A stretch of 42,251 nt of DNA from Macrostomum lignano (Eukaryota). Where the stretch lies: positions 1-42,251 of the forward strand of contig NIVC01002535.1 in NCBI GenBank assembly GCA_002269645.1, written 5' to 3'. Shown here in pieces: positions 19,600 through 42,090 of this stretch. Below the pieces are notes generated by a model that ran no database searches, was not told the DNA's origin, and saw only the letters and a program-made list of their open reading frames with translations. Position 1 is the first letter of the stretch. Each line of letters opens with the position of its first letter. A program made the translations under genes and the position numbers.

Positions 19600-21236
19600 T
19601 ATTGATTATCAATGTTCAATATAGCAATTGTCAAAATATGGGTTTATGTCTATGACATTTGCATTAGCTTAATTCCAATAGAATGAAAAATAAGAAACCT
19701 TCTGCTAAAGCCCATCCAACAAACTTAAATTCTTTGTTCCTGTTTTGCTTTTAAGAAGTTTAAGAATCAGTTTGAATGAAGAACTTAAAGCTTATCATAT
19801 AGAGACAACTGAAACCAGGTCCAGATTACTAATGACAGAAAAAATACAACTCTACAGGATTCGCAATGAATACGAGATTAAGAATAAATATGACAGAACA
19901 CAAAACTTTAGTTGACTAGTAATAAATGTATCAGGTATAAAATAAATGCAACGAAAATCTAGGCGAAATAAATTAAATGATTGCGTAGAATCGACTTTTA
20001 AGTATAATTTTCGTAGTTTTATTCACGCCTACTGATTGTTGATAGTCTAAGCCCGTCCGCACTAATCTAATCAATGTCTTGGAAAAAAATTGTGCGATAA
20101 TTAGTCGAAATTAAAATATGAAAAGTCTTTAAAAATTAAAAAAACTGCTACCTACTGAAACATATCCTAAGTAATTATATAAACTTCTAACAATTAAATT
20201 GAAAGTTTTTTTTTTAAACTAAAAACTAATGCGTATGCTGTGTTATAACGGTACGAATTTTTAATGCTCGAATTTTACAAGAAACGAAATATAGCTATTA
20301 CCTATTACCTAATTACCTACCTAAGTAATTTGCAACACATATTATCCTAATTTTTTGTTGCATAAATGCATTTTTTAGCTCAATTGCAAAACGCATTGCA
20401 TTTTTTCTCCAAGTTTTCCATCTTAAGTATTAGTCCTTTGCCTATTAAAGTAGTACCTAGTAGAATGATGCTGTATGCAATGCAATATATGCAACTTTGG
20501 TAATGGTACTAACTAGTACTAGGCCTAGTAGTCCATATTAAAAAATGTGTGATTTATGCAATTGGCTAATTGCCACACTTTACAGATAGACCTCTTTGAC
20601 AGCACAGTGTAACATGGCAAAAGGGAAAATGTATAGTTTGTACTTGTTGGAGTGCCTGGAACACTTACATCGTATATGCCCTAGCTAGAAGTTTCAAAGG
20701 AGCTTTAGCATTTATAGTGTGTAATAGCATTATAGGCATAGATCATTGATCGTTGTAGCTTATAATAGAAACTTAAATAGGTCCCAGTATAGCTGAGAGC
20801 ATGAGTGGCAAGTGCCACTAAGTATATAAAACAAGCTAATATTCATAGACTCATATATGACACATTGTGACTGAAGTATTTATGCATATTGGCCAATTCA
20901 ATTGCCACATTCGAAAATTTATTCGAATAGGCATAGTAATGGCATTCTATTTTAATAAAGAACTAAATTAATAAAGATAAAGTAAGACATAAAATATACT
21001 TTTATTTTACTGGAATAGTAGATATATTATGAAAGTGATTGACTTTAGCAGTGTTTATTTGATAGCTTATATAATAGTGCATTGTTATCATTATAAAGAA
21101 TAATTACTTTGACATGTTTTTTTTGCATTTAGGCCTAGTTTTTTATAGAATATAGCACAGACTTATAATTACAATTGTTCTAGGTCTAACTTCTGTCTTA
21201 CTAAGATTCTACTTTTTGTCACCAAGCATACATGTG

Positions 21237-21384
21237 TAACCTAGGGATTCACCTAGCTGTTTCTATTGGCAACATATACATATAAGTCGCTATTGGCTAA
21301 GAGTAGTCATGTGACTACTATTCCATCCAATAGCAACTTACATGTGTGTTGCCAATAGAAATGGCTGGGTGAATCCCTGGGTTG
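21237..21384. other. ~148-bp imperfect palindrome (foldback element), copy 1
   Basis: Arms GGGATTCACC..TTTCTATTGGCAACA..TAAGT.GCTATTGG pair with CCAATAGC.ACTTA..TGTTGCCAATAGAAA..GGTGAATCCC; centre AGTAGTCA-TG-TGACTACT. Confidence 0.85.
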
Positions 21385-22334
21385 CGCCCAAGCATGTCAC
21401 TATCACCAAATTGTTCTAGTGCTAATTTCTGCTTTCTAAGAAAATATCTTAATTCACTTGATTTCTTGGAAAACTAATGGTAGCTATGAGTGCCTGAGTG
21501 GTAGGACTACTAAATTTAAAACAAGTCTGAAATTATTGCATTTTCCAGGGATCAAAGGTTTCTAATATCAGCCATTAATCTACTAACACCTTCATAGTTT
21601 TTTGTTAATGCTAATGCCTAATGTCTAATGTTTACTAACCTACTGTCTAATCACCTGATCCTAGTGCCTAATTTTAGCCTTCACAGCTTGATTTCCTAGT
21701 TTAAGCATTTATGGCTTGATATTTACTAAGCTTTTCTAGCTTTCTCTGGGGCTTTTACAGCTTTTCCCTGAGCCTTTACAGCCCTTTGCCCTGAACATTT
21801 CTTAGGGTCTTTATAATCTTGCTTGACTAAAAGAATTAAAACTTCAGGGAAAACTTGAATTTAAAGCCTATTTGGATGGCTAATTGGCAACTGCAACTTT
21901 GGAGCATAAAAGTTAGAATGGTTCTCCAGAAGCCAAAAGTTAGAGTTTATTTCTTCTATAGGTGTCACTGCTTATATAGTACCCATAAAATCAAGTGAAA
22001 TATCCTTGGTTGGGCAAAGTTGATCAACTTTAACAAATTTTTTCATTGGTTTAAAACAAAATTTTAGAAAATTGCTCATTGTTGCAAGAATTATATGAAA
22101 TTTTGTCAACTGTACACTACTAAAAGTAAGCAAAGACAAGAATGTTTTAAGAATTAATTTTTCCCTTTATCACAATTATCCAATAGCCTTAATAAGACAT
22201 GACATAAAAACCAATCAACAGATGGCGAGGGAGCCAATTATAACAGACCAAAAGTCTTAGACCCTCTGTCCTGAGCTGCTGCATGAACTCAAGCTGTAGG
22301 GATCATGCAGGCAAGGCCAAGGGCGAATGGCGAG

Positions 22335-22445
22335 ATTCTCTTCTGTCCCATTTTCTCTCCTCTCTCCCCTCTCCTCCCCTCTCCCCTCTTTTTTTCCCCT
22401 TCTCTCTCTTTTCTCCCTCCCTCCTCTCTCCCTTCTCTCCTTTCC
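22335..22445. repeat. CT-rich low-complexity tract (paralogue at ~31628-31740)
   Basis: Read directly. Confidence 0.8.
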
Positions 22446-22851
22446 TGACATGTTTTCTTTAATTCTTTTCTTACTATTCAAGATCTTCTGTGAGGGCCAT
22501 GGCCTACTTATCAAGGATTGGTTTCCAAGAAGGCCCTCCTTTGCAATCTAGCCTTCTTTGATAGTGGCAAATGCTGGATGGCTTCCCCATTGGCTTCATT
22601 CATCCTAACTTAAGCCCCCACCATCTCAATCATAAATGTACATGTAGTGCAAAACTGTTGTTTGAGTTTGAGTTTGAGTTGTATCATAAAATCGTCAACC
22701 ACTATATATACAATTTAATTGCTTTTCTTAAAATTTCAGCATTTAGCATTGTGAAACAATAGTTAATCGATTATTTTTGCATATTGACAACCTAAATAAA
22801 ATGTTTGTTACTTTGTATTAACTATACTTTTTCAGTGTTGCCATAGGTGCC

Positions 22852-25420
22852 ATGACGCACAATGAGAAACGAGCTCATTGGCTTAAGGAAGGGGGCATAG
22901 GTCTAGGCGTTGGCATCCTCTATGGTGTCACCAATGTGGTTGTTGGCCACCCATTTGACACTATGAAGACCAAAATGCAGGCCCAGCGAGGCTTTGACAC
23001 TGGCGGAATGCTGAAAGCTTTTAGCAAAACTTGGCGTGCTGAAGGAGTTATTGGATTATATCGGTAAGTCTAAATGCCGCTGTCTACATTTGATTCACCA
23101 AGAAGACACGAAGTTCAATATAAATTAATTCCCTGCCTTTTATACATCCTAGGGGTTGCATTCCGCCTCTGTGGGGCTCTGGAATTTTTCGTTCAACCCA
23201 ATTTGCCGTGTTCGAAAGTGTCTACACCGGCTTGAGCTCTAGTCTGTTTATTGAGCCCATCCCCTTCACCGGCGGAGTGCAAGGGTGAGTGCTATCAATC
23301 CCAACGATTGTAGCGTTTCAATCTTCAATATTGATTTGCCACCTTAACCCCAGCAGCGAGACTCAGCCACCACCACCCCATCTGAGGACCCACAGCACTG
23401 TATCAGATGAGGACTATAAGCCCACAGCACTGTATCAGATGAGGACTATAAGCCCACAGCACTGTATCAGATGAGGACTATAAGCCCACAGCACTGTATC
23501 AGATGAGGACTATAAGCCCACAGCACTGTATAAGATGAGGACTATAAGCCCACAGCACTGTATCAGATGAGGACTATAAGCCCACAGCACTGTATAAGAT
23601 GAGGACTATAAGCCCACAGCACTGTATCAGATGAGGACTATAAGCCCACAGCACTGTATAAGATGAGGACTATAAGCCCACAGCACTGTATAAGATGAAG
23701 ACTATAAGCCCACAGCACTGTATCAGATAAGGACTATAAGCCCACAGCACTGTATAAGATGAGGACTATAAGCCCACAGCACTGTATCAGATGAGGACTC
23801 TAAGCCCACAGCACTGTATCAGATAAGGACTATAAGCCCACAGCACTGTATCAGATGAGTACTATAAGCCCCACAGCACTGTATAAGATGAGGACTATAA
23901 GCCCACAGCACTGTATAAGATGAGGACTATAAGCCCACAGCACTGTATCAGATGAGGACTATAAGCCCACAGCACTGTATCAGATGAGGACTATAAGCCC
24001 CACAGCACTGTATAAGATGAGGACTATAAGCCCACAGCACTGTATAAGATGAGGACTATAAGCCCACAGCACTGTATAAGATGAGGACTATAAGCCCACA
24101 GCACTGTATCAGATGAGGACTATAAGCCCACAGCACTGTATAAGATGAGGACTATAAGCCCACAGCACTGTATAAGATGAGGACTATAAGCCCACAGTAC
24201 TGTATCAGATGAGGACTATAAGCCCACAGCACTGTATCAAATGAGGACTATAAGCCCCACAGCACTGTATCAGATGAGGACTATAAGCCCACAGCACTGT
24301 ATCAGATGAGGACTATAAGCCCCACAGCACTGTATCAAATGAGGACTATAAGCCCCACAGCACTGTATCAAATGAGGACTATAAGCCCCACAGCACTGTA
24401 TCAGATGAGGACTATAAGCCCCACAGCACTGTATCAGATGAGGACTATAAGCCCCACAGCACTGTATCAAATGAGGACTATAAGCCCCACAGCACTGTAT
24501 CCGATGAGGACTATAAGCCCCACAGCACTGTATCCGATGAGGACTATAAGCCCCACAGCACTGTATCAAATGAGGACTATAAGCCCCACAGCACTGTATC
24601 AAATGAGGACTATAAGCCCCACAGCACTGTATCCGATGAGGACTATAAGCCCACAGCACTGTATCAGATGAGGACTATAAGCCCCACAGCACTGTATCCG
24701 ATGAGGACTATAAGCCCACAGCACTGTATCAAATGAGGACTATAAGCCCACAGCACTGTATCAGATGAGGACTATAAGCCCACAGCACTGTATCCGATGA
24801 GGACTATAAGCCCCACAGCACTGTATCCGATGAGGACTATAAGCCCCACAGCACTCCATGGCTGATACAGTGCTCTCCCCATCAGCGTTTCAGCATCAGC
24901 GCTCTCCCCATCGCCGCAGGCGGGTCATCTTAGGCGGCATTCTGGCATCCACCGCTCGCGCCATAATCGAGTGCCCGCTTGAAGTGGCGAAAATCCGTCG
25001 CCAAACTGGCCAAACTTGGACCCTGGGCGGACTCTACAGCGGTTTCAGCGTCACCTGGGTTCGAACCCTCGGCCTAATGACTACTTACTTTGTTTTAATT
25101 GACTCCGGTCGGAGACATTTTCCGGACTTTTTTCCCGTTCAGTTGCTGGACCATTCCTGGCATCGGGAATGGCTGCGACAGCCGCCTGGTGGCTCGTGTG
25201 GCCGCTGGAGTACATGAAGAGCCAGGTGCAGGGCCAGTATGGCCAGCCCATGCCAATCCTTGCCAGGCTCAGGCTCACTATTCAGCAGCGAGGCGGCTTC
25301 TTCGGACTTTATCGCGGCCTGCTGCCGGGCACCATTCGCAGCTTCTTAGCTAACGGCACTTCAATGGTTGTTATGCAGTTTGCTCAACGGAAAGTCTCCG
25401 AATTAGGATTGCGAGGCTAG
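22852..25420 (+). CDS. SLC25 mitochondrial carrier, copy 1; exons 22852-23063, 23153-23284, 24920-25420, with a 1-nt frameshift near 25128-25133 (281 aa if corrected)
   Basis: Three carrier signature motifs HPFDTMKTK, CPLEVAKIR, WPLEYMKSQ; canonical GT-AG phase-2 introns. Subfamily not assigned. Confidence 0.88.
23385..24855. repeat. 32-33-bp minisatellite GAGGACTATAAGCCC(C)ACAGCACTGTATCAGAT in SLC25 intron 2, copy 1
   Basis: Read directly. Confidence 0.97.
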
Positions 25421-25534
25421 GCCTTGGATATGAACTTGCCTACTTGTAGTAGACATGTGCTGATGAAATACTCCTACAACTTTAATTATTCATACTACTA
25501 CCCGTTTCCTGCTACCCAGCCTTAAGTAATTCAA

Positions 25535-26757
25535 ATCTGCCTCTCTGCTCCCCTCAGTGTCCTTGAATCTGCCTCTCTGCTACCCTCAGTGTCCTTGAAT
25601 CTGCCTCTCTGCTCCCCTCAGTGTCCTTGAATCTGCCTCTCTGCTCCCCTCAGTGTCCTTGAATCTGCCTCTCTGCTCCCCTCAGTGTCCTTGAATCTGC
25701 CTCTCTGCTCCCCTCAGTGTCCTTGAATCTGCCTCTCTGCTCCCCTCAGTGTCCTTGAATCTGCCTCTCTGCTCCCCTCAGTGTCCTTGAATCTGCCTCT
25801 CTGCTCCCCTCAGTGTCCTTGAATCTGCCTCTCTGCTCCCCTCAGTGTCCTTGAATCTGCCTCTCTGCTCCCCTCAGTGTCCTTGAATCTGCCTCTCTGC
25901 TCCCCTCAGTGTCCTTGAATCTGCCTCTCTGCTCCCCTCAGTGTCCTTGAATCTGCCTCTCTTCTCCCCTCAGTGTCCTTGAATCTGCCTCTCTGCTCCC
26001 CTCAGTGTCCTTGAATCTGCCTCTCTGCTCCCCTCAGTGTCCTTGAATCTGCCTCTCTGCTCCCCTCAGTGTCCTTGAATCTGCCTCTCTGCTCCCCTCA
26101 GTGTCCTTGAATCTGCCTCTCTGCTCCCCTCAGTGTCCTTGAATCTGCCTCTCTGCTCCCCTCAGTGTCCTTGAATCTGCCTCTCTGCTCCCCTCAGTGT
26201 CCTTGAATCTGCCTCTCTGCTCCCCTCAGTGTCCTTGAATCTGCCTCTCTTCTCCCCTCAGTGTCCTTGAATCTGCCTCTCTGCTCCCCTCAGTGTCCTT
26301 GAATCTGCCTCTCCGCTCCCCTCAGTGTCCATGAATCTGCCTCTCTGCTCCCCTCAGTGTCCTTGAATCTGCCTCTCTGCTCCCCTCAGTGTCCTTGAAT
26401 CTGCCTCTCTGCTCCCCTCAGTGTCCTTGAATCTGCCTCTCTGCTCCCCTCAGTGTCCTTGAATCTGCCTCTCTGCTCCCCTCAGTGTCCTTGAATCTGC
26501 CTCTCTGCTCCCCTCAGTGTCCTTGAATCTGCCTCTCTGCTCCCCTCAGTGTCCTTGAATCTGCCTCTCTGCTCCCCTCAGTGTCCTTGAATCTGCCTCT
26601 CTTCTCCCCTCAGTGTCCTTGAATCTGCCTCTCTGCTCCCCTCAGTGTCCTTGAATCTGCCTCTCCGCTCCCCTCAGTGTCCTTGAATCTGCCTCTCCGC
26701 TCCCCTCAGTGTCCTTGAATCTGCCTCTCCGCTCCCCTCAGTGTCCTTGAATCTGCC
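25535..26757. repeat. 32-bp minisatellite ATCTGCCTCTCTGCTCCCCTCAGTGTCCTTGA (~38 units) between the convergent SLC25 and peptide genes
   Basis: Read directly. Confidence 0.97.
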
Positions 26758-27579
26758 ACCCCTCTACTTAAATTTGATATTACTTCCAATCCAATAACTA
26801 ACTGGTGCACGTTATTAATCCGTGTTAGGAAGAAATCGGGATCAATGAAATGTGCATTTCCATCTGTTTTGTATAATATAAGTTTTAATCATGACCCGAC
26901 ACTTAGTCATTTTTCATCTACCAGTTACTAATTAAGTCAATTGGCATATATTAATCTATTCCAAATGCATTGTAATTTGAATTTTTCGATCATGTTTTAT
27001 AAATCCCAGCTAGCCAGACTTCACCTACTGTTACAAAATGTTATTAGGTAGTTTTTACACGAGCTCATTATTTTTACTACGTCATTTTATGACTGGCCGC
27101 TTCCGGTGCCTAAAATGAGCCATGGATTTTTGAGTAAGTCGAGTAGGTCTGCTCATGTTGCTCTGGTGTCATAAAAAATTAAATATACACTTTTTGTTGC
27201 TTACTGCTGCTAAATGATTTGCCCGTGTAAATGAGTATTTGAAAACCTGAGTAAATTGCAATTAAACCCTTGAATGTATTAATCAATGTGCGGGTCTGCA
27301 GACTAAATGCTAATCAATTAAATAATGTTGAACACGAAACGCCAAACAGATTATAAGTACTCGTATTTGCCCGAACTAATTAAATCCAGTACAAAATTAA
27401 TCTCAGTGTAGGGAATACTTCATTAAATTATATTTCAGTCAACAATACAGTTACAGTACATGGTTAGCAACTAGAAATAATCTGATTGAGTCCCACAGTT
27501 CAAAGGCCAGCGATCATGGGCGGTGTCCGGTCCGTGTCCGAGGTCAGTGGGTGCAGCGGAGCACCTGCCTACAGTCTAC

Positions 27580-27849
27580 CTACTTGCCTAGCGGCAGGTG
27601 GCGGTAGATCCTGTAGGCCCTGCTGGCAACGCGGAGCACCCTCCTCCACCTGATGCGGATGCGGCGAAGGAGCCACTTCTTCTGCAGCTCGGCGGCCCTC
27701 TCGTCCGTCATCTCCGGCTCGTCCATGTCGGCCAGAGCCTCCAGCGCCGCCATCGCCTCCGCGTCCTCTTGGCTGTTCTCCTGGCTGTTGGGTCTGGCGG
27801 CGGCCAGGGCTGCGCACAGCAGGAGTCCGAGAACAAACTGCCACCTCAT
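27580..27849 (-). CDS. Secreted cationic peptide precursor (candidate antimicrobial peptide), copy 1, intronless, 89 aa
   Basis: Hydrophobic signal MRWQFVLGLLLCAALAAA; D/E-rich propiece; KK; Arg-rich WLLRRIRIRWRRVLRVASRAYRIYRHLPL; terminal GK; GC-rich codons; TATA box upstream. Confidence 0.85.
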   Translation of the reverse strand: MRWQFVLGLLLCAALAAARPNSQENSQEDAEAMAALEALADMDEPEMTDERAAELQKKWLLRRIRIRWRRVLRVASRAYRIYRHLPLGK

Positions 27850-27948
27850 GATGAAGAAGTTAAGAGCTGTAGCCTGATGAAGCTGAGAAGCTGGTAGAGT
27901 TATCTAGCCTTGGCTGCTTGGTTGTCCGCTAAGCATCCAAGGGCCCTG

Positions 27949-27956
27949 TATTTATA
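27949..27956 (-). promoter_or_regulatory. TATA box (TATAAATA) of peptide gene copy 1
   Basis: Consensus match 100 nt upstream of the ATG; same spacing in all three copies. Confidence 0.7.
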
Positions 27957-28749
27957 GTGTAGAAATCAGCACGTTTTTCCGGTCGATTGGAATGCCAAGG
28001 GCTCCGCTGTGTCCCCTTCACGTGCTGCCGTCTTTTCTTGGATGGTTAGCCCCTTATGTCTTAGCCATCTTTTAGCTTTATTGTCCATTTGTCCACTCAT
28101 TGCCAAGGCTCTGAGGGCATTGAACTTGAATACTACTGCATTTGAATTGAATTTGTTGGCCTGCCCGCCTGCATGCAATGTGTTATAGAAAGCACACTGA
28201 GCTTCTCAAGTAGTTTGAGAACAATAGCTAAAGGTTTGAGTCGCTAAAATTGTGTATTCCATTTTATAGAAGCCTAAAAGTTGAGTTTGAGATTGGAGAG
28301 GGCTGTCTGGACACCTCAGGTCGAGTTCAAGTTCGCTGCTTTGAGATAACGATTTGGCTGAACAAGCATGTTGTGCATCACTGCTGACAAGATGTTTGAT
28401 TGTGATCGGCAGCTGATTCACTTCACCAATGAAGTTTTTTTCTTTGAACATCTAAAACGCATTTGTCTTTTCATTTGAAGTTTCTGCTGTTCGTAGTACA
28501 CACTGCAGAAATAAGTACAATAGTTCATGTTACGAGCAACTTATCCTTATCAATTTTTTAAATGATATGATGCTTTCTAGGTCCTACATTTAATTAACTT
28601 CTACGTGTAATTTTGAGTTCTGCATGCAATAATTTTTTAAGAATCTGGAAAATAACGTTTCTGTCAATAATTTTAACTTGTCCTATACTCAACAACTATT
28701 AAAGACTCACGAAGCTTGCTTGGCTCTAGTGTTTGCTCGGGTATCATGC

Positions 28750-30136: not shown

Positions 30137-30159
30137 ACGAGCGTATGTAATGTGCGCGT

Positions 30160-30287: not shown

Positions 30288-30529
30288 ATTACTTTTATTT
30301 TACTGGAATAGTAGATATATTATGAAAGTGATTGACTTTAGCAGTGTTTATTTGATAGCTTATATAATAGTGCATTGTTATCATTATAAAGAATAATTAC
30401 TTTGACATGTTTTTTTTGCATTTAGGCCTAGTTTTTTATAGAATATAGCACAGACTTATAATTACAATTGTTCTAGGTCTAACTTCTGTCTTACTAAGAT
30501 TCTACTTTTTGTCACCAAGCATACATGTG

Positions 30530-30677
30530 TAACCTAGGGATTCACCTAGCTGTTTCTATTGGCAACATATACATATAAGTCGCTATTGGCTAAGAGTAGT
30601 CATGTGACTACTATTCCATCCAATAGCAACTTACATGTGTGTTGCCAATAGAAATGGCTGGGTGAATCCCTGGGTTG
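30530..30677. other. ~148-bp imperfect palindrome, copy 2
   Basis: Same sequence as 21237-21384. Confidence 0.85.
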
Positions 30678-32144
30678 CGCCCAAGCATGTCACTATCACC
30701 AAATTGTTCTAGTGCTAATTTCTGCTTTCTAAGAAAATATCTTAATTCACTTGATTTCTTGGAAAACTAATGGTAGCTATGAGTGCCTGAGTGGTAGGAC
30801 TACTAAATTTAAAACAAGTCTGAAATTATTGCATTTTCCAGGGATCAAAGGTTTCTAATATCAGCCATTAATCTACTAACACCTTCATAGTTTTTTGTTA
30901 ATGCTAATGCCTAATGTCTAATGTTTACTAACCTACTGTCTAATCACCTGATCCTAGTGCCTAATTTTAGCCTTCACAGCTTGATTTCCTAGTTTAAGCA
31001 TTTATGGCTTGATATTTACTAAGCTTTTCTAGCTTTCTCTGGGGCTTTTACAGCTTTTCCCTGAGCCTTTACAGCCCTTTGCCCTGAACATTTCTTAGGG
31101 TCTTTATAATCTTGCTTGACTAAAAGAATTAAAACTTCAGGGAAAACTTGAATTTAAAGCCTATTTGGATGGCTAATTGGCAACTGCAACTTTGGAGCAT
31201 AAAAGTTAGAATGGTTCTCCAGAAGCCAAAAGTTAGAGTTTATTTCTTCTATAGGTGTCACTGCTTATATAGTACCCATAAAATCAAGTGAAATATCCTT
31301 GGTTGGGCAAAGTTGATCAACTTTAACAAATTTTTTCATTGGTTTAAAACAAAATTTTAGAAAATTGCTCATTGTTGCAAGAATTATATGAAATTTTGTC
31401 AACTGTACACTACTAAAAGTAAGCAAAGACAAGAATGTTTTAAGAATTAATTTTTCCCTTTATCACAATTATCCAATAGCCTTAATAAGACATGACATAA
31501 AAACCAATCAACAGATGGCGAGGGAGCCAATTATAACAGACCAAAAGTCTTAGACCCTCTGTCCTGAGCTGCTGCATGAACTCAAGCTGTAGGGATCATG
31601 CAGGCAAGGCCAAGGGCGAATGGCGAGATTCTCTTCTGTCCCATTTTCTCTCCTCTCTCCCCTCTCCTCCCCTCTCCCCTCTTATTTTCCCTTTCTCTCT
31701 CTTTTCTCCCTCTCTCCTCTCTCCCTTCTCTCCTCTCCTGACGTGTTTTCTTTAATTCTTACCATTCAAGATCTTCTGAGGGCCATGGCCTACTTATCAA
31801 GGATTGGTTTCCAAGAAGGCCCTCCTTTGCAATCTAGCCTTCTTTGATAGTGGCAAATGCTGGATGGCTTCCCCATTGGCTTCATTCATCCTAACTTAAT
31901 CCCCCACCATCGACCATCTCAATCATAAATGTACATGTAGTGCAAAACTGTTGTTTGAGTTTGAGTTTGAGTTGTATCATAAAATCGTCAACTACTATAT
32001 ATACAATTTAATTGCTTTTCTTAAAATTTCAGCATTTATCATTGTGAAACAATAGTTAATCGATTATTTTTGCATATTGACAACCTAAATAAAATGTTTG
32101 TTACTTTGTATTAACTATACTTTTTCAGTGTTGCCATAGGTGCC

Positions 32145-35100
32145 ATGACGCACAATGAGAAACGAGCTCATTGGCTTAAGGAAGGGGGCATAGGTCTAGG
32201 CGTTGGCATCCTCTATGGTGTCACCAATGTGGTTGTTGGCCACCCATTTGACACTATGAAGACCAAAATGCAGGCCCAGCGAGGCTTTGACACTGGCGGA
32301 ATGCTGAAAGCTTTTAGCAAAACTTGGCGTGCTGAAGGAGTTATTGGATTATATCGGTAAGTCTAAATGCCGCTGTCTACATTTGATTCACCAAGAAGAC
32401 ACGAAGTTCAATATAAATTAATTCCCTGCCTTTTATACATCCTAGGGGTTGCATTCCGCCTCTGTGGGGCTCTGGAATTTTTCGTTCAACCCAATTTGCC
32501 GTGTTCGAAAGTGTCTACACCGGCTTGAGCTCTAGTCTGTTTATTGAGCCCATCCCCTTCACCGGCGGAGTGCAAGGGTGAGTGCTATCAATCCCAACGA
32601 TTGTAGCGTTTCAATCTTCAATATTGATTTGCCACCTTAACCCCAGCAGCGAGACTCAGCCACCACCACCCCATCTGAGGACACACAGCACTGTATCAGA
32701 TGAGGACTATAAGCCCACAGCACTGTATCAGATGAGGACTATAAGCCCACAGCACTGTATCAGATGAGGACTATAAGCCCACAGCACTGTATCAGATGAG
32801 GACTATAAGCCCACAGCACTGTATCAGATGAGGACTATAAGCCCACAGCACTGTATCAGATGAGGACTATAAGCCCACAGCACTGTATCAGATGAGGACT
32901 ATAAGCCCACAGCACTGTATCAGATGAGGACTATAAGCCCACAGCACTGTATCAGATGAGGACTATAAGCCCACAGCACTGTATCAGATGAGGACTATAA
33001 GCCCACAGCACTGTATCAGATGAGGACTATAAGCCCACAGCACTGTATCAGATGAGGACTATAAGCCCCACAGCACTGTATCAGATGAGGACTATAAGCC
33101 CCACAGCACTGTATCAGATGAGGACTATAAGGCTCATTCCATATAAGCATGGTCGTAACATGACAGGTTATTTTTACTTATAAAATGAAATCTAATAATA
33201 GAATATACTAAACCAATATTTTAAATGAAAGATTATTTTGTCTAGAATATATTTATAGAGTTTCATATAGATATCATCATTAGTATAGATGCTATTAAAC
33301 CTTAAATGACACTTATGGTCGTAACGACAGGATTTTTGACATATAGAAACTAAAAGGTAAAAGTCTTATAACATTTTTCATTTTTGATATTTTGCAATAC
33401 ATTTTTAAAATTTGACTAAGAACATCTTTAGAAATCATACTCTTTTATTAGAATATATAAACTCAAAAGGCAACAAAGATACAAAAGAAAAGGCAGCCTT
33501 ATGGTCGTAACATTTTTTTTTCTGTCAATTCAGTAACTTTGAGGTACTAATACATTAAAAATATAATAGATTATTTGGTCACCAATGCTTTTATCTGATG
33601 ATGCAAGTACTATACTTTTATCTATAGTTTGTTTCAACCTTCAAAAGCTTTCTATTTGTTTTTAAAAGGTACAAAATCTTAATGATGTCTTTTGCTTCAA
33701 AAAATGTCCAAATTTTTACTAAAATGACTTTTTGCCAATTGATAACATACTAATCCAACATTTTACCATTCCTTTATTCTTAGATTGTATATATTGCACA
33801 ATATAAACATTTGGTAAAAAAATAGGCTAATTAGGCAATGGCAAGCAAAAATATTGACTTTTTTCTATTTTCCAAATATGTCCATCTTATATGGAATGAG
33901 CCATAAGCCCCACAGCACTGTATCAGATGAGGACTATAAGCCCACAGCACTGTATCAGATGAGGACTATAAGCCCACAGCACTGTATCAGATGAGGACTA
34001 TAAGCCCACAGCACTGTATCAGATGAGGATTATAAGCCCACAGCACTGTATCAGATGAGGACTATAAGCCCACAGTACTGTATCAGATGAGGACTATAAG
34101 CCCACAGCACTGTATCAGATGAGGACTATAAGCCCACAGCACTGTATCAAATGAGGACTATAAGCCCACAGCACTGTATCAGATGAGGACTATAAGCCCA
34201 CAGTACTGTATCAAATGAGGACTATAAGCCCACAGCACTGTATCAGATGAGGACTATAAGCCCCACAGCACTGTATCAGATGAGGACTATAAGCCCACAG
34301 CACTGTATCAGATGAGGACTATAAGCCCACAGCACTGTATCAGATGAGGACTATAAGCCCACAGCACTGTATCAGATGAGGACTATAAGCCCACAGCACT
34401 GTATCAGATGAGGACTATAAGCCCACAGCACTGTATCAGATGAGGACTATAAGCCCACAGTACTGTATCAGATGAGGACTATAAGCCCACAGCACTGTAT
34501 CAGATGAGGACTATAAGCCCACAGCACTGTATCAGATGAGGACTATAAGCCCACAGCACTGTATCAGATGAGGACTATAAGCCCCACAGCACTGTATCAA
34601 ATGAGGACTATAAGCCAACAGCACTGTATCAGATGAGGACTATAAGCCCACAGCACTGTATCAGATGAGGACTATAAGCCCACAGTACTGTATCAGATGA
34701 GGACTATAAGCCCACAGTACTGTATCAGATGAGGACTATAAGCCCACAGTACTGTATCAGATGAGGACTATAAGCCCCACAGCACTGTATCAGATGAGGA
34801 CTATAAGCCCACAGCACTGTATCAGATGAGGACTATAAGCTCCACAGCACTGTATCAGATGAGGACTATAAGCCCACAGTACTGTATCAGATGAGGACTA
34901 TAAGCCCCACAGCACTGTATCAGATGAGGACTATAAGCCCCACAGCACTGTATCCGATGAGGACTATAAGCCCCACAGCACTGTATCAAATGAGGACTAT
35001 AAGCCCCACAGCACTGTATCCGATGAGGACTATAAGCCCCACAGCACTGTATCAGATGAGGACTATAAGCCCCACAGCACTGTATCCGATGAGGACTATA

Positions 35101-35778
35101 AGCCCCACAGCACTGTATCCGATGAGGACTATAAGCCCCACAGCACTGTATCCGATGAGGACTATAAGCCCCACAGCACTGTATCCGATGAGGACTATAA
35201 GCCCCACAGCACTCCATGGCTGATACAGTGCTCTCCCCATCAGCGTTTCAGCATCAGCGCTCTCCCCATCGCCGCAGGCGGGTCATCTTAGGCGGCATTC
35301 TGGCATCCACCGCTCGCGCCATAATCGAGTGCCCGCTTGAAGTGGCGAAAATCCGTCGCCAAACTGGCCAAACTTGGACCCTGGGCGGACTCTACAGCGG
35401 TTTCAGCGTCACCTGGGTTCGAACCCTCGGCCTAATGACTACTTACTTTGTTTTAATTGACTCCGGTCGGAGACATTTTCCGGACTTTTTTCCCGTTCAG
35501 TTGCTGGACCATTCCTGGCATCGGGAATGGCTGCGACAGCCGCCTGGTGGCTCGTGTGGCCGCTGGAGTACATGAAGAGCCAGGTGCAGGGCCAGTATGG
35601 CCAGCCCATGCCAATCCTTGCCAGGCTCAGGCTCACTATTCAGCAGCGAGGCGGCTTCTTCGGACTTTATCGCGGCCTGCTGCCGGGCACCATTCGCAGC
35701 TTCTTAGCTAACGGCACTTCAATGGTTGTTATGCAGTTTGCTCAACGGAAAGTCTCCGAATTAGGATTGCGAGGCTAG
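32145..35778 (+). CDS. SLC25 mitochondrial carrier, copy 2; exons 32145-32356, 32446-32577, 35278-35778, same 1-nt frameshift
   Basis: ORF-track translations are identical to copy 1. Confidence 0.88.
32680..35213. repeat. 32-33-bp minisatellite in SLC25 intron 2, copy 2, interrupted by the MITE
   Basis: Read directly. Confidence 0.97.
33131..33902. mobile_element. Non-autonomous DNA transposon (MITE), 772 bp, 17-bp perfect TIRs, 4-bp TSD ATAA
   Basis: GGCTCATTCCATATAAG ... CTTATATGGAATGAGCC. The repeat unit ACTATAAGCCC is split as ACTATAA|element|ATAAGCCC. AT-rich, no ORF, absent from copy 1. Confidence 0.92.
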
Positions 35779-35892
35779 GCCTTGGATATGAACTTGCCTA
35801 CTTGTAGTAGACATGTGCTGATGAAATACTCCTACAACTTTAATTATTCATACTACTACCCGTTTCCTGCTACCCAGCCTTAAGTAATTCAA

Positions 35893-36411
35893 ATCTGCCT
35901 CTCTGCTCCCCTTAGTGTCCTTGAATCTGCCTCTCTGCTCCCCTCAGTGTCCTTGAATCTGCCTCTCTGCTCCCCTCAGTGTCCTTGAATCTGCCTCTCT
36001 GCTCCCCTCAGTGTCCTTGAATCTGCCTCTCTGCTCCCCTCAGTGTCCTTGAATCTGCCTCTCTGCTCCCCTCAGTGTCCTTGAATCTGCCTCTCTGCTC
36101 CCCTCAGTGTCCTTGAATCTGCCTCTCTGCTCCCCTCAGTGTCCTTGAATCTGCCTCTCTGCTCCCCTCAGTGTCCTTGAATCTGCCTCTCTTCTCCCCT
36201 CAGTGTCCTTGAATCTGCCTCTCCGCTCCCCTCAGTGTCCATGAATCTGCCTCTCCGCTCCCCTCAGTGTCCATGAATCTGCCTCTCCGCTCCCCTCAGT
36301 GTCCTTGAATCTGCCTCTCCGCTCCCCTCAGTGTCCATGAATCTGCCTCTCCGCTCCCCTCAGTGTCCTTGAATCTGCCTCTCCGCTCCCCTCAGTGTCC
36401 TTGAATCTGCC
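35893..36411. repeat. 32-bp minisatellite, copy 2 (~16 units)
   Basis: Read directly. Confidence 0.97.
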
Positions 36412-37233
36412 ACCCCTCTACTTAAATTTGATATTACTTCCAATCCAATAACTAACTGGTGCACGTTATTAATCCGTGTTAGGAAGAAATCGGGATCAAT
36501 GAAATGTGCATTTCCATCTGTTTTGTATAATATAAGTTTTAATCATGACCCGACACTTAGTCATTTTTCATCTACCAGTTACTAATTAAGTCAATTGGCA
36601 TATATTAATCTATTCCAAATGCATTGTAATTTGAATTTTTCGATCATGTTTTATAAATCCCAGCTAGCCAGACTTCACCTACTGTTACAAAATGTTATTA
36701 GGTAGTTTTTACACGAGCTCATTATTTTTACTACGTCATTTTATGACTGGCCGCTTCCAGTGCCTAAAATGAGCCATGGATTTTTGAGTAAGTCGAGTAG
36801 GTCTGCTCATGTTGCTCTGGTGTCATAAAAAATTAAATATACACTTTTTGTTGCTTACTGCTGCTAAATGATTTGCCCGTGTAAATGAGTATTTGAAAAC
36901 CTGAGTAAATTGCAATTAAACCCTTGAATGTATTAATCAATGTGCGGGTCTGCAGACTAAATGCTAATCAATTAAATAATGTTGAACACGAAACGCCAAA
37001 CAGATTATAAGTACTCGTATTTGCCCGAACTAATTAAATCCAGTACAAAATTAATCTCAGTGTAGGGAATACTTTATTAAATTATATTTCAGTCAACAAT
37101 ACAGTTACAGTACATGGTTAGCAACTAGAAATAATCTGATTGAGTCCCACAGTTCAAAGGCCAGTGATCATGGGCGGTGTCCGGTCCGTGTCCGAGGTCA
37201 GTGGGTGCAGCGGAGCACCTGCCTACAGTCTAC

Positions 37234-37503
37234 CTACTTGCCTAGCGGCAGGTGGCGGTAGATCCTGTAGGCCCTGCTGGCAACGCGGAGCACCCTCCTC
37301 CACCTGATGCGGATGCGGCGAAGGAGCCACTTCTTCTGCAGCTCGGCGGCCCTCTCGTCCGTCATCTCCGGCTCGTCCATGTCGGCCAGAGCCTCCAGCG
37401 CCGCCATCGCCTCCGCGTCCTCTTGGCTGTTCTCCTGGCTGTTGGGTCTGGCGGCGGCCAGGGCTGCGCACAGCAGGAGTCCGAGAACAAACTGCCACCT
37501 CAT
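37234..37503 (-). CDS. Secreted cationic peptide precursor (candidate antimicrobial peptide), copy 2, 89 aa
   Basis: Protein identical to copy 1. Confidence 0.85.
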   Translation of the reverse strand: MRWQFVLGLLLCAALAAARPNSQENSQEDAEAMAALEALADMDEPEMTDERAAELQKKWLLRRIRIRWRRVLRVASRAYRIYRHLPLGK

Positions 37504-37602
37504 GATGAAGAAGTTAAGAGCTGTAGCCTGATGAAGCTGAGAAGCTGGTAGAGTTATCTAGCCTTGGCTGCTTGGTTGTCCGCTAAGCATCCAAGGGCCC
37601 TG

Positions 37603-37610
37603 TATTTATA
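37603..37610 (-). promoter_or_regulatory. TATA box of peptide gene copy 2
   Basis: TATAAATA 100 nt upstream of the ATG. Confidence 0.7.
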
Positions 37611-37961
37611 GTGTAGAAATCAGCACGTTTTTCCGGTCGTTGGAATGCCAAGGGCTCCGCTGTGTCCCCTTCACGTGCTGCCGTCTTTTCTTGGATGGTT
37701 AGACCCTTACAGTATGTCTTAGCCATCTTTTAGCTTTATTGTCCATTTGTCCACTCATTGCCAAGGCTCTGAGGGCATTGAACTTGAATACTACTGCATT
37801 TGAATTGAATTTGTTGTACAAATTTGTCGAATTGAATTTGTGCACAAGCGCGGCATTGAACTCTACAGCGCTGCCCAAGCTCTTACGAGTATAGTAGCTT
37901 CTATTGAGAACAATAGAGCTTGCTGTTCTCATAACTCCCCCCCCAGCCACCTAGCCAAAGA

Positions 37962-39060: not shown

Positions 39061-39087
39061 TCGCCACGCGCACATTACATACGCTCG

Positions 39088-39460
39088 TATCTAAGCTAAT
39101 TTACCTGAGCACATTGCATATCTAAGCTAATTTACCTGAGCACATTGCATATCTAAGCTAATTTACCTGAGCACATTGCATATCTAAGCTAATTTACCTG
39201 AGCACATTGCATATCTAAGCTAATTTACCTGAGCACATTGCATATCTAAGCTAATTTACCTGAGCACATTGCATATCTAAGCTAATTTACCTGAGCACAT
39301 TGCATATCTAAGCTAATTTACCTGAGCACATTGCATATCTAAGCTAATTTACCTGAGCACATTGCATATCTAAGCTAATTTACCTGAGCACATTGCATAT
39401 CTAAGCTAATTTACCTGAGCACATTGCATATCTAAGCTAATTTACCTGAGCACATTGCAT
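39088..39460. repeat. 31-bp repeat, inverted copy, 12 units
   Basis: Read directly. Confidence 0.95.
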
Positions 39461-39924
39461 CTGGGAAAATCTTTCTGAACAACAGAAAAAATTATGATAT
39501 CGGGGTCTTGCAGAATCAGCGTCAGGGCGCATCTGTCTGGGCTTGGACGCGAACGTAGGCCTCGCGCTGACCGAATCTGGGGCTCCGGGGATCTTGCGGC
39601 CTGCCAGCAGGAGTCGCCAGCATCGGAACAGGTCGGCGCGGTGCATAAGACTACGGTTTTCAGCGTGTTGGCCACCAAGCATGCCGAGCCGCCTTGACGG
39701 TTCGCGTCGACCCACGCGTCACCGCAACAGAAGTTCTCGTCGAAGGAAGAGCAGTTCGCAGCGTACAGTGAAGCACCAGAACGAACCGGAACGGCGCCTA
39801 ACGAATTCCTTGAAGCACCTCAGAGGATATGTTAGCACAGCAGCCTTCATAACACGGCACATCGTTTTGGTTGCAGAAAGCAGCTGCTCTGGTATAATTG
39901 AGACATCTGAACAAATCTACATGA

Positions 39925-41185
39925 GCATATGGCATCTGAGCATATGGCATCTGAGCATATGGCATCTGAGCATATGGCATCTGAGCATATGGCATCTGAG
40001 CATATGGCATCTGAGCATATGGCATCTGAGCATATGGCATCTGAGCATATGGCATCTGAGCATATGGCATCTGAGCATATGGCATCTGAGCATATGGCAT
40101 CTGAGCATATGGCATCTGAGCATATGGCATCTGAGTATATGGCATCTGAGCAAATAGGATCTGAGCATATGGCATCTAAGCATATGGCATCCGAGCATAT
40201 GGCATCTGAGCATATGGCATCTGAGCATATGGCATCTGAGCATATGGCATCTGAGCAAATAGGATCTGAGCATATGGCATCAGAGTATATGGTATCTGAG
40301 CATATGGTATACCTGAGCATATGGCATCTGAGCATATGGCATCTGAGCATATGGCATCTGAGCAAATAGGATCTGAGCATATGGCATCTGAGCATATGGC
40401 ATCTGAGCAAATAGGATCTGAGCATATGGCATCTGAGCATATGGCATCTGAGCATATGGCATCTGAGCATATGGGATCTGAGCATATGGCATCTGAGCAT
40501 ATGGCATCTGAGCAAATAGGATCTGAGCATATGGCATCTGAGCATATGGCATCTGAGCATATGGCATCTGAGCATATGGCATCTGAGCAAATAGGATCTG
40601 AGCATATGGCATCTGAGCAAATAGGATCTGAGCATATGGCATCTGAGCAAATAGGATCTGAGCATATGGCATCTGAGCAAATAGGATCTGAGCAAATGGC
40701 ATCTGAGCATATGGCATCTGAGCATATGGCATCTGAGCAAATAGGATCTGAGCATATGGCATCTGAGCAAATAGGATCTGAGCATATGGCATCTGAGCAT
40801 ATGGCATCTGAGCATATGGCATCTGAGCAAATAGGATCTGAGCATATGGCATCTGAGCAAATAGGATCTGAGCATATGGCATCTGAGCAAATAGGATCTG
40901 AGCATATGGCATCTGAGCATATGGCATCTGAGCAAATAGGATCTGAGCATATGGCATCTGAGCAAATAGGATCTGAGCATATGGCATCTGAGCAAATAGG
41001 ATCTGAGCATATGGCATCTGAGCATATGGCATCTGAGCATATGGCATCTGAGCAAATAGGATCTGAGCATATGGCATCTGAGCAAATAGGATCTGAGCAT
41101 ATGGCATCTGAGCATATGGGATCTGAGCATATGGCATCTGAGCATATGGCATCTGAGCATATGGCATCTGAGCATAAGGCATCTC
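39925..41185. repeat. 15-bp minisatellite, inverted copy (longer than copy 1)
   Basis: Read directly. Confidence 0.97.
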
Positions 41186-41983
41186 AGCATGATACCCGAG
41201 AAAACACTAGAGCCAAGCAAGCTTCGTGAGTCTTTAATAGTTGTTGAGTATAGGACAAGTTAAAATTATTGACAGAAACGTTATTTTCCAGATTCTTAAA
41301 AAATTATTGCATGCAGAACTCAAAATTACACGTAGAAGTTAATTAAATGTAGGACCTAGAAAGCATCATATCATTTAAAAAATTGATAAGGATAAGTTGC
41401 TCGTAACATGAACTATTGTACTTATTTCTGCAGTGTGTACTACGAACAGCAGAAACTTCAAATGAAAAGACAAATGCGTTTTAGATGTTCAAAGAAAAAA
41501 ACTTCATTGGTGAAGTGAATCAGCTGCCGATCACAATCAAACATCTTGTCAGCAGTGATGCACAACATGCTTGTTCAGCCCAAATCGTTATCTCAAAGCA
41601 GCGAACTTGAACTCGACCTGAGGTGTCCAGACAGCCCTCTCCAATCTCAAACTCAACTTTTAGGCTTCTATAAAATGGAATACACAATTTTAGCGACTCA
41701 ACCTTTAGCTATTGTTCTCAACTACTTGAGAAGCTCAGTGTGCTTTCTATAACACATTGCATGCAGGCGGGCAGGCCAACAAATTCAATTCAAATGCAGT
41801 AGTATTCAAGTTCAATGCCCTGCAGAGCCTTGGCAATGAGTGGACAAATGGACAATAAAGCTAAAAGATGGCTAAGACATACTGTAAGGGTCTAACCATC
41901 CAAGAAAAGACGGCAGCACGTGAAGGGGACACAGCGGAGCCCTTGGCATTCCAACGACCGGAAAAACGTGCTGATTTCTACAC

Positions 41984-41991
41984 TATAAATA
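41984..41991 (+). promoter_or_regulatory. TATA box of peptide gene copy 3
   Basis: TATAAATA 100 nt upstream of ATG 42091. Confidence 0.7.
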
Positions 41992-42090
41992 CAGGGCCCT
42001 TGGATGCTTAGCGGACAACCAAGCAGCCAAGGCTAGATAACTCTACCAGCTTCTCAGCTTCATCAGGCTACAGCTCTTAACTTCTTCATC

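Follow-up and report, generated by a model that had tools for sequence, protein, structure and literature searches.

What is encoded by the short open reading frame at 27580..27849 of Macrostomum lignano contig NIVC01002535.1, and what might its product do for the animal? The window considered here is the whole stretch of this contig that was analysed, 42,251 nucleotides in length, for which a first-pass annotation, naming no strand, had proposed an undescribed, Arg-rich, amidated host-defence peptide precursor that is intronless, TATA-driven and present in three copies. Its pointer to flatworms was correct. We take the gene to be real, transcribed and intronless and its product to be a putatively secreted prepropeptide, and regard it as evenly poised whether the cationic peptide acts as a host-defence (antimicrobial) effector. 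The antimicrobial function is plausible but unproven. The coding sequence, its predicted parts and the promoter elements upstream of it are as follows.

27580..27849, minus strand: complete coding sequence of copy 1, 89 codons plus stop, intronless, with the translation MRWQFVLGLLLCAALAAARPNSQENSQEDAEAMAALEALADMDEPEMTDERAAELQKKWLLRRIRIRWRRVLRVASRAYRIYRHLPLGK*
27796..27849, minus strand: predicted signal peptide, residues 1-18, MRWQFVLGLLLCAALAAA, with Ala at -3 and -1 of the putative cleavage site
27682..27795, minus strand: acidic propiece, residues 19-56 (38 aa), with 12 D/E and 2 R and a net charge of -10
27676..27681, minus strand: Lys57-Lys58, putative convertase cleavage site
27589..27675, minus strand: predicted mature peptide WLLRRIRIRWRRVLRVASRAYRIYRHLPL, 29 aa, with 10 Arg, a predicted amphipathic helix
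27580..27588, minus strand: Gly88-Lys89-stop, candidate amidation signal
27949..27956, minus strand: TATAAATA box of copy 1, 107 nt upstream of the ATG
27970..27980, minus strand: promoter motif GGAAAAACGTG of copy 1, about 14 nt upstream of the TATA box

A recount reproduced all residue and charge totals first given for the signal, propiece, Lys-Lys pair, 29-mer and Gly-Lys-stop, as well as the placement of the hydrophobic residues of the 29-mer at positions 6, 10, 13, 17, 20, 24 and 27. Besides its 10 Arg, the 29-mer contains one His and neither Asp, Glu nor Cys, giving a net charge of +10. We infer secretion of the precursor, as well as every processing step and the exact mature product. 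Because the predicted 29-mer itself carries internal RR sites at 4-5 and 11-12 plus a furin-type RWRR, the end-product is uncertain and may be shorter. The amidated 29-mer has a computed monoisotopic mass of 3842.35 Da, and a cut at RR would leave the 17-mer VLRVASRAYRIYRHLPL, the amide of which has a computed mass of 2081.25 Da.

The helical character of the peptide was assessed by hydrophobic moment and by structure prediction. The Eisenberg hydrophobic moment of the 29-mer reaches its maximum, 0.58, at 100 degrees, and 2.8% of 5000 shuffles of the same sequence attain the observed value. AlphaFold2 modelled the precursor with helices only (pTM 0.29), predicting one at residues 3-17 in the signal region and a single helix across residues 49-84, with a mean pLDDT of 75-83 per 10-residue block between residues 51 and 80. 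Searched against PDB sequences, the mature peptide matched 2js5 alone, an uncharacterised protein, and we discarded this match as chance (E = 0.52).

The surroundings of the gene are built from large repeated segments, and these contain the further copies.

37234..37503, minus strand: coding sequence of copy 2, protein identical to that of copy 1
37603-37610: TATA box of copy 2
37624-37634: promoter motif of copy 2
42091..42251, plus strand: copy 3, inverted and head-to-head with copy 2, ending at the window edge
41984-41991: TATA box of copy 3
41960-41970: promoter motif of copy 3
20997..28158: segmental duplication unit 1, carrying the peptide gene along with a mitochondrial-carrier gene and minisatellites of 32 bp
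30290..37816: segmental duplication unit 2, 98.8% identical to unit 1
39274..42251: inverted duplicate of 27688-30137 at 95% identity, containing the 5' part of the peptide gene, its promoter and a 15-bp minisatellite

Thus the original count of three copies holds in part: two are intact and identical, and the third is inverted, carries indels and is cut at the end of the window (42251). Compared with copies 1 and 2, copy 3 shows a 2-nt deletion in the coding sequence (at about 42150-42156) and a 1-nt insertion near 42234, with the rest identical. Its counterpart on another GenBank contig, NIVC01002243.1, is intact, and for this reason the two indels may be assembly errors. That contig also carries an annotated protein identical to the copy 1 product.

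The TATA box that had been described upstream of the gene is indeed present, at the distance from the ATG given above, and is kept across copies. Its ATAAAT is unchanged in 7 family promoters, as is the motif GGAAAAACGTG, which within the window is found at the three gene copies only; the short subfamily has the variant GGAAACACGTG. All family members examined, including the short subfamily, have in common a promoter layout of GGAAA[A/C]ACGTG followed by ATAAAT. Whichever function of the peptide holds, this compact conserved combination of motif and TATA box lends itself to work with reporter transgenes.

Evidence for transcription comes from a paralogue with 78% amino acid identity to the window protein. 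It was detected as transcript RNA815_1838.3 (Mlig001477.g4), which is collinear with the paralogue at L005:5977-6340, and the primers designed on this transcript for in situ hybridisation match the paralogue exactly with a spacing of 364 bp on transcript and genome alike, in agreement with the earlier description of the gene as intronless. More generally, the GenBank gene models of M. lignano were built on an RNA-seq-based transcriptome assembly (PMC5730564); many of the family's models are ‘partial’ and include translated 5'UTR. The only published in situ hybridisation for the family is the one for RNA815_1838.3, which is recorded as "gonads" (Ramm et al. 2019, via Brand et al. 2020), the transcript having been picked from the study of socially sensitive expression by Ramm et al. 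2019. The probe has 82% nucleotide identity to the window gene, and cross-hybridisation between paralogues may occur. Positional RNA-seq gives 93 reads for this transcript in head-only fragments, 94 when the testis region is added, 49 when the ovaries are added and 176 in whole worms, and its positional class is [0,0,0], with low counts and no enrichment by region. Since similarly low read numbers are already found in head-only fragments, the transcript is not gonad-restricted.

By sequence comparison, the window gene is a member of an unnamed, lineage-restricted M. lignano prepropeptide family (M[RK]WQ; BOX15_Mlig hypothetical proteins). Clustered at 90% identity, this family comprises at least 23 groups, every one annotated as "hypothetical protein" or ‘uncharacterized’, and profile E-values for its members run from 1e-15 to 1e-52. 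Three close homologues were found, and a HMMER profile scan without filters, covering 1.84 billion representative proteins, yielded 10 representatives at 50% identity; its matches were from Macrostomum plus one unplaced Logan contig, SRR31628392_42504 (P0006). No relatives outside Macrostomum-like sequence, in other flatworms or animals, were detected in the 1.84 billion-protein scan.

The view of the family as undescribed has therefore stood up to these searches: Pfam gave nothing over threshold, the database relatives are all hypothetical or uncharacterized M. lignano proteins, and the BLASTP/HMMER-type check for a close match to a characterised family returned only such proteins and the Logan contig. 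Two Pfam candidates, HCMV_UL124 (17 bits) and DUF5324 (14.5 bits), fell below their cut-offs of 27 and were rejected as chance. The family is not mentioned in the literature that we searched by its gene IDs and sequence, or in that on M. lignano antimicrobial peptides, neuropeptides and prohormones, or on single-cell atlases, the microbiome or immunity, and the supplements of PMC5946080, PMC5816591, PMC12896417 and PMC10786194 contain nothing relevant to it. Apparent fusion proteins among the gene models were also set aside: P0001 (139 aa), in which two family copies are joined over 27 kb, is a chimeric or read-through model rather than a true fusion, and the same applies to P0004 (634 aa, ‘Sushi’) and P0025 (‘SERPIN’) as supposed domain fusions. 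Some copies in the family are broken.

When the members are compared, the amino-terminal half of the precursor proves to be the constant part. The signal follows the consensus M[RK]WQ[FLI][AV]LGLLLCAALA, with L7, G8, L9, L10, L11 and C12 unchanged in 16 members; the propiece keeps an (A/V)LEAL core, with L36, E37, L39 and K58 conserved (K58 does not vary in alignment A4 and reaches at least 90% conservation in A2); and the residue after K or KK is aromatic or aliphatic. The window gene fits on each of these points. The net charge of the propiece lies between -4 and -16 across all 21 distinct members, and 17 of the 21 end in G, GK or GKR, the window gene in GK. The C-terminal peptide is hypervariable, ranging from 6 to 34 aa and occurring as long Arg/Trp putative helices, one Pro/Arg repeat and peptides of 6-10 aa with alternating hydrophobic residues and Arg, and its sequences almost wholly lack Asp and Glu. 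A few members are weakly cationic or very short (FIHIHF-amide, IFRVHVRF-amide and AVYKPNYYKD). Propiece and peptide net charge are strongly anticorrelated across the members (rho = -0.90, n = 21, a statistic that ignores phylogeny); within the short subfamily the correlation is also found (rho -0.77, p = 0.005), and within the long subfamily it is not significant (rho -0.43).

Taken across the family, the constancy of signal and propiece next to a hypervariable cationic peptide, the Gly signal in 17/21 and the co-variation of the charges favour an antimicrobial or toxin-type precursor. For the window gene, the 18-aa signal would direct the precursor to the ER and be removed after Ala18, and the acidic propiece (net -10) would balance the charge of the cationic peptide (+10) during trafficking. 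A subtilisin-type proprotein convertase would then cut after Lys57-Lys58, a carboxypeptidase would trim Lys89, and PHM/PAL would turn Gly88 into a C-terminal Leu-amide. The freed Arg/Trp-rich peptide may fold as an amphipathic helix on anionic membranes and disrupt or cross them.

By analogy, the layout of the family is like that of frog, Hydra and spider precursors of cationic peptides, without detectable homology. In preprodermaseptin-type precursors a conserved signal and acidic spacer lead through a dibasic site to one hypervariable C-terminal cationic peptide, and the amphibian dermaseptin superfamily is a large paralogous family, often with a Gly or Gly-Lys signal, in which substitution rates are raised in the mature part. 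The Macrostomum family shares with it the conserved preproregion and hypervariable mature part as a functional analogy only, since the 1.84 billion-protein scan gave no amphibian match and no Pfam family exceeded threshold. It also differs in having KK rather than KR, in being intronless, in being Arg-rich rather than Lys-rich and in a paralogue recorded in gonads, whereas dermaseptins are made in skin glands. The arminins and periculins of Hydra are likewise taxon-restricted, and behind the signal their anionic N-terminal part is followed by a strongly cationic, Arg/Trp-containing C-terminal region of about 30 aa with a Gly-Lys-type tail; periculins show maternal germline expression, which would fit a ‘gonads’ pattern. 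The window gene has the same anionic and cationic layout as arminin, at -10 and +10, as an analogy of layout only: the phylum differs, and homology to arminin was not found in Pfam or in the 1.84 billion scan, assuming that Hydra proteins were included. The Macrostomum family also has its 6-10-aa peptides and the Pro/Arg-repeat member.

The cathelin-like prodomain of cathelicidins, with its four Cys, is absent from the window gene (no Pfam match, and a propiece without Cys), and the profile scans gave no match to trematode helminth defence molecules (FhHDM-1-type). At the level of the peptide itself, R-DIM-P-LF11-322 (PFWRIRIRR-P-RRIRIRWFP-NH2), a designed peptide derived from lactoferricin, perturbs anionic (phosphatidylserine) membranes (PMC6347193). 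The window peptide shares with LF11-322 and R-DIM-P-LF11-322 the heptamer RRIRIRW, amidation (predicted here) and a net charge of about +9 to +11, but is predicted to be a helix, whereas R-DIM-P-LF11-322 is predicted to form a beta-hairpin. Since the designed peptide is synthetic, this likeness is one of compositional convergence and not of ancestry.

Several observations speak against the antimicrobial reading. The paralogue is listed from "gonads", not epidermis or gut, and its positional RNA-seq is flat and low. FIHIHF-amide, IFRVHVRF-amide and AVYKPNYYKD make unconvincing antimicrobials, being so short or so weakly charged, and the convertases invoked for KK could also cut at RR and RWRR. 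A more specific proposal, which we put forward tentatively as possible but doubtful, is that the family is a Macrostomum counterpart of the dermaseptin and cathelicidin principle, in which one cassette of signal, anionic propiece and promoter has been duplicated with three types of peptide and which may be gonadal and regulated by the social or mating context, protecting gametes, embryos or received ejaculate. The three types would be the Arg/Trp helices, the Pro/Arg repeat and ultra-short beta-strand peptides such as FVRVRVRL-amide. We know of no characterised gene-encoded antimicrobial peptides in free-living flatworms, and literature searches agree; if the cassette proposal is true, this would be the first such family. 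Among flatworms, stable transgenesis is available in M. lignano alone (PMC8717057), and RNAi and gnotobiotic protocols are established for it (PMC5730564, PMC10024726). If antimicrobial, the family would offer a tractable model for mucosal and gonadal immunity and for microbiome control in a regenerating animal, and its very short natural peptides, Arg-rich and amidated, would be of pharmacological interest.

Among the alternatives to a host-defence effector, the one that fares best is a reproductive secreted peptide from testis and/or ovary, acting on gametes, eggs or the mating partner and not in immunity, which we consider unlikely. Its roles could lie in fertilisation, egg-coat and sperm interaction or sexual conflict, with the diversification of the family representing the usual speed of reproductive proteins. 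The "gonads" entry for RNA815_1838.3 and its origin in a study of socially sensitive expression point in this direction, as do the lineage restriction of the family and its fast-evolving mature region. However, the [0,0,0] class of that transcript and its reads in the head-only fragment argue against it, and the in situ probe may have cross-hybridised among paralogues. To our knowledge, extreme Arg content with amidation is no trait of Macrostomum seminal or gonadal proteins. A hybrid of the reproductive and defence readings is possible in the form of a gonadal antimicrobial that guards gametes or embryos.

It is rather improbable that the gene instead encodes a signalling-peptide precursor (a neuropeptide, hormone or pheromone), with the short -VRI, -VRL and -VRF-amides typical of its output and the long Arg-rich peptides split at RR into smaller ones. 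The canonical prohormone layout is there in the form of a signal, a spacer rich in acidic residues, a dibasic cleavage site and a Gly at the C-terminus, the short subfamily would yield amides of 6-10 aa, the long peptides have the internal RR sites that such processing would use, and the expression of the paralogue in head fragments fits neurons. Lophotrochozoan FVRIamide and myomodulin-type -RLamide peptides have C-termini that resemble those of the short-subfamily amides, and FVRIamide and myomodulin-like precursors are alike in dibasic site, Gly signal and -VRI- or -VRL-amide ends. Yet in the aligned family the conservation is the reverse of that expected for a receptor ligand: the putative bioactive part is the least conserved and the spacer and signal the most, the opposite of neuropeptide precursors. 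Unlike lophotrochozoan neuropeptide precursors, each Macrostomum precursor has a single, variable peptide, and a single species has more than 20 diverged paralogue clusters, with no orthologue detected in other flatworms or animals. The co-variation of peptide and propiece charge also suits the masking of toxicity and not ligands. If the function should prove reproductive or signalling, this would be a large, fast-evolving and socially regulated peptide family relevant to work on sexual selection.

We hold it very unlikely that the peptide is a cytolytic gland secretion, a toxin or repellent against predators, competitors or prey with the same membrane chemistry and eukaryotic targets. This possibility shares the structural arguments for the antimicrobial reading, and head-fragment expression would fit frontal and pharyngeal glands. 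Spider and scorpion linear cytolytic peptides have a similar layout, in that latarcin-type precursors place a cationic amphipathic helix with a Gly amidation signal behind a signal peptide and an acidic propeptide. The Macrostomum family differs from these in showing no homology, in the lack of a known venom gland and in having KK in place of the Arg-ending processing quadruplet motif. We know of no described venom apparatus in M. lignano, which is a diatom feeder; the read counts are low, and the in situ record gives no gland pattern for the paralogue.

Paralogue pairs also allowed us to compare rates of change along the precursor. Within M. lignano, dN is about 1 to 9.5-fold higher in the mature part than in the signal and propiece, and 2-5-fold in most pairs. 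We do not claim positive selection in the mature part because pairwise Nei-Gojobori dN/dS there is mostly below 1 (0.3-1.1, with one pair above 1), dS is raised too and the alignment is uncertain in this Arg-rich, low-complexity region. By contrast with the mature part, signal and propiece show a dN/dS of 0.19-0.55 in the gene's frame. This frame is maintained in more than 20 paralogue clusters and between paralogues whose proteins differ by up to about 50%, and indels among aligned intact paralogues are whole codons. Thus, while the region is GC-rich with long overlapping open reading frames in other frames and on the opposite strand, the near-identical window copies are by themselves uninformative about constraint and broken copies occur, the idea of a spurious or non-functional stretch left open by chance inside a recent duplication, against which the conserved promoter also speaks, is effectively refuted by this constraint on the frame, the paralogue's transcript and the transcript-based gene models.

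We found that the minus strand from 27849 to 27580 encodes a complete prepropeptide, whereas no sensible reading was found on the plus strand of 27580-27849. Recounting the residues upheld the layout proposed in the first-pass annotation: an 18-aa hydrophobic N-terminus ending in Ala-Ala-Ala, a 38-residue propiece with 12 Asp/Glu and two Arg (net -10) followed by Lys-Lys, a 29-residue C-terminal peptide with 10 Arg, one His and neither acidic residues nor Cys, and a closing Gly-Lys-stop. The 3/4 spacing of hydrophobic residues was also borne out (peptide positions 6, 10, 13, 17, 20, 24 and 27), and the Eisenberg hydrophobic moment of the peptide reaches its maximum at exactly 100 degrees (0.58), exceeding 97.2% of 5000 shuffles. 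In the AlphaFold2 model built on a 16-sequence family alignment, residues 49-84 form a continuous helix, with mean pLDDT of 75-83 per 10-residue block over residues 51-80, and no tertiary fold of the precursor was found (pTM 0.29). The main features of the window are as follows.

2447-2815, minus: Nop25
8114-10547, plus: protein prenyltransferase alpha-subunit-repeat protein with C-terminal LRRs (Rab GGTase alpha-like)
13198-14376, minus: RPEL-repeat protein (phosphatase-and-actin-regulator-like)
22852-25420 and 32145-35778, plus: SLC25-type mitochondrial carrier (Pfam Mito_carr), duplicated alongside the peptide gene
27849 to 27580, minus: peptide gene copy 1, ATG to stop, 89 codons, translated as MRWQFVLGLLLCAALAAARPNSQENSQEDAEAMAALEALADMDEPEMTDERAAELQKKWLLRRIRIRWRRVLRVASRAYRIYRHLPLGK
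27949-27956, minus: TATAAATA box, 107 nt upstream of the copy 1 ATG
27970-27980 (minus), 37624-37634 (minus) and 41960-41970 (plus): promoter motif, from a motif search of the window
37234-37503, minus: peptide gene copy 2, encoding the same protein as copy 1
42091, running off the window at 42251, plus: peptide gene copy 3, inverted, from a sequence match
563-1004, 1720-2395, 8513-9389, 12491-13371, 14414-14948 and 15716-16929: minisatellite arrays, first half
23389-24855, 25534-26757, 28746-29489, 33903-35213, 38199-39062 and 39922-41190: minisatellite arrays, second half

The genes other than the peptide copies are ordinary eukaryotic genes. Minisatellites are dense across the window (period 15-44 bp, up to 85 copies), several of them lying within gene introns or flanks, and they generate numerous long ORFs that are spurious, in every frame.

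Of the three copies originally claimed, two are intact in the window and the third is truncated by its end. Copies 1 and 2 show no mismatches over the 44-nt stretch searched and are 99.1% identical over the surrounding ~1.16 kb. They belong to a segmental duplication (20997-28158 versus 30290-37816, 98.8% match), each unit of which carries the mitochondrial-carrier gene, 32-bp minisatellites and the peptide gene; the 32-bp array in the carrier intron differs in copy number between the two units. In addition, 27688-30137 is repeated inverted at 42251-39274 (95%). Aligned over 272 nt, copy 3 matches copies 1 and 2 except that 2 nt are missing at ~42150-42156 and a G has been added near 42234; both changes shift the frame. 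Since GenBank contig NIVC01002243.1 carries this copy undamaged, they appear to be either errors of long-read assembly or a lesion of very recent origin; the assembly probably introduced them as indels at short GC-rich repeats, which points to local consensus errors in the window assembly. Part of NIVC01002243.1 (GCA_002269645.1) is 99.6% identical to the window but differs elsewhere, with the 96%-identical family protein P0002 standing where the window carries copy 1. This makes the window a different assembly or haplotype of that locus.

When 5.8 billion proteins were searched, three relatives emerged, all Macrostomum lignano 'hypothetical proteins'. Scanning 1.84 billion representatives with a profile HMM and the word filter off yielded just 10 hits; all but one come from M. 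lignano, the exception being a 929-bp genomic Logan contig of unassigned species. A wider profile gave 23 clusters at 90% identity. The profile HMM scans detected no relatives outside Macrostomum-like sequence, and Pfam has no family for the window protein. In databases the family appears solely as hypothetical proteins. Together with the lack of any discussion in the searchable literature, this agrees with the earlier description of the precursor as undescribed. Long gene models (139 aa, 634 aa 'Sushi' and 'SERPIN') were rejected as true fusions and are chimeras; GenBank model Mlig001477.g4, for example, splices two family copies 27 kb apart.

Every member begins with the signal M[RK]WQ..LGLLLCAALA and continues into an acidic propiece built around an (A/V)LEAL core. 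Next come K or KK, with K58 invariant across family alignment A4, and an aromatic or aliphatic residue; the region C-terminal of the K/KK site is hypervariable. Long-type members, including the window gene, carry Arg/Trp-rich peptides of 18-34 aa, while the short subfamily has 6-10 aa in which hydrophobic and basic residues alternate (FVRVRVRL, FIRARVRVRL, IFRVRVRI, WLRVRARVRI, FVRVHVRF and FIHIHF). One further peptide type has two Cys and another is a Pro/Arg repeat, FLRVRLPRVRMPRVRLPRVRLPRLRVRFRW. The classical amidation signal (C-terminal G, GK or GKR) is present in 17 of 21 distinct members. The member on Logan SRR31628392 contig 42504 (541-813), with the Pro/Arg-repeat mature part RVRLPRVRMPRVRLPRVRLPRLRVRFRW, ends in KK without Gly; its peptide recalls proline-rich antimicrobial peptides. 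At other M. lignano loci, P0013/P0017 and P0029 have barely or non-cationic peptides (AVYKPNYYKD and FIHIHF-amide), so a single conserved prepro cassette may deliver peptides of different kinds.

When M. lignano paralogues are compared, the mature part shows ~1 to 9.5 times the dN of the signal and propiece, most pairs falling at 2-5 times, and its dS is also raised, ~1 to 5.6 times. The frame is under constraint, dN/dS being 0.19-0.55 for signal plus propiece and 0.3-1.1 for the mature part; the paralogue dN/dS did not demonstrate positive selection. Without phylogenetic correction, propiece and peptide net charges are inversely correlated (Spearman rho -0.90, n=21), as they are within the short subfamily (-0.77, p = 0.005), the long-subfamily value (-0.43) not being significant.

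The TATA element claimed for the gene was found and is conserved in family promoters. The invariant motif GGAAAAACGTG, recovered by promoter alignment, lies ~14 nt upstream of it in every member examined, including the upstream regions of family-bearing loci L003, L005, L006, L007 and L008-L010, and the arrangement is present in 7/7 aligned long-subfamily promoters, Logan contig included. Short-subfamily promoters have GGAAACACGTGCC then CATAAAT, GGAAACACGTG being their version of the motif. Exactly three occurrences of GGAAAAACGTG were found in the window, one upstream of each copy. The motif contains an ACGTG core (E-box/HRE-like) adjoining a GGAAA element.

The Mlig_3_7 GenBank annotation derives from an RNA-seq-based transcriptome assembly (PMC5730564), and several family gene models are 'partial' owing to a translated 5'UTR; the family is therefore transcribed. 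For one paralogue, the entry in Table S11 of Brand et al. 2020 (PMC7336406) gives transcript RNA815_1838.3 (501 nt, equivalent to Mlig001477.g4), ISH primers with a 364-nt probe, expression in 'gonads' and the reference Ramm et al. 2019. Both primers match NIVC01001664.1 (locus L005) exactly, at 5977-6000 and 6320-6340, and the amplicon covers the complete coding sequence of a paralogue of 88 aa (WLGRRRRVRIRWRKVLRLVYRIYRHMPL-GK) with 78% protein identity to the window gene. Because the primers lie 364 bp apart on the genome as on the transcript, this paralogue is transcribed and intronless, which bears out for it the intronless structure first claimed for the window gene. The probe is 82% identical to the window copies at the nucleotide level, and the 'gonads' pattern need not hold for them. 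A role in the gonads or in reproduction would fit this ISH entry and the origin of the probe in a social-sensitivity study, but not the reads in the head fragment; we consider it unlikely. Arbore et al. 2015 (PMC4490696) counted 93 reads for RNA815_1838.3 in head-only samples, 94 with testes added, 49 with ovaries added and 176 in whole worms (positional class [0,0,0]), so paralogue expression is low and extends anterior to the gonads, without regional enrichment. The ISH and positional RNA-seq do not agree well, and these sparse data do not point clearly to immunity.

We favor a defence-type precursor. On established secretory-pathway biology, signal peptidase would cut after Ala18 and a proprotein convertase after KK, with Lys89 removed by carboxypeptidase and Gly88 serving PHM/PAL amidation. 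The acidic propiece may mask the cationic peptide until release, an idea supported by the balance of propiece and peptide charges across the family. With a net charge of ~+11 and helix-arrayed Arg, Trp, Ile, Val and Leu, the predicted product resembles membrane-active host-defence peptides in its physico-chemical properties. The heptamer at its core, RRIRIRW, is identical to the one in an amidated lactoferricin-derived design that perturbs anionic membranes selectively (PMC6347193). As RR also occurs inside the 29-mer at 4-5 and 11-12, with a furin-type RWRR at 9-12, the true product could instead be a 17-mer, VLRVASRAYRIYRHLPL-amide, or different fragments.

A signalling peptide would account for the prohormone layout and the short amides; however, a variable peptide beside a conserved spacer is the contrary pattern, and the number of paralogues and absence of orthologues also contradict this role, making it quite improbable. 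A cytolytic toxin seems very improbable, and a spurious ORF is excluded by the constraint on the frame across paralogues. For the defence-type precursor the structural case is good, and by analogy a defence function is proposed. The layout works like those of frog preprodermaseptins, Hydra arminins and periculins, and spider linear cytolytic peptides; the analogy is one of layout, and Pfam and profile HMM scans found no homology to these groups, nor to cathelicidins or trematode HDMs. The finding belongs most naturally with a known kind of precursor, of which it is a new family confined to one lineage. Lineage-restricted cationic peptide families are common, and M. lignano is a tractable model organism.

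The second locus, NIVC01001664.1, holds five family copies (6001, 12837-13007, 14340, 22089-22354 and 33055). Two are broken, one by an in-frame stop with loss of the C-terminus and one by a frameshift. Isolated promoter or 5'UTR-like fragments also occur on this contig at 29495 and 31138.
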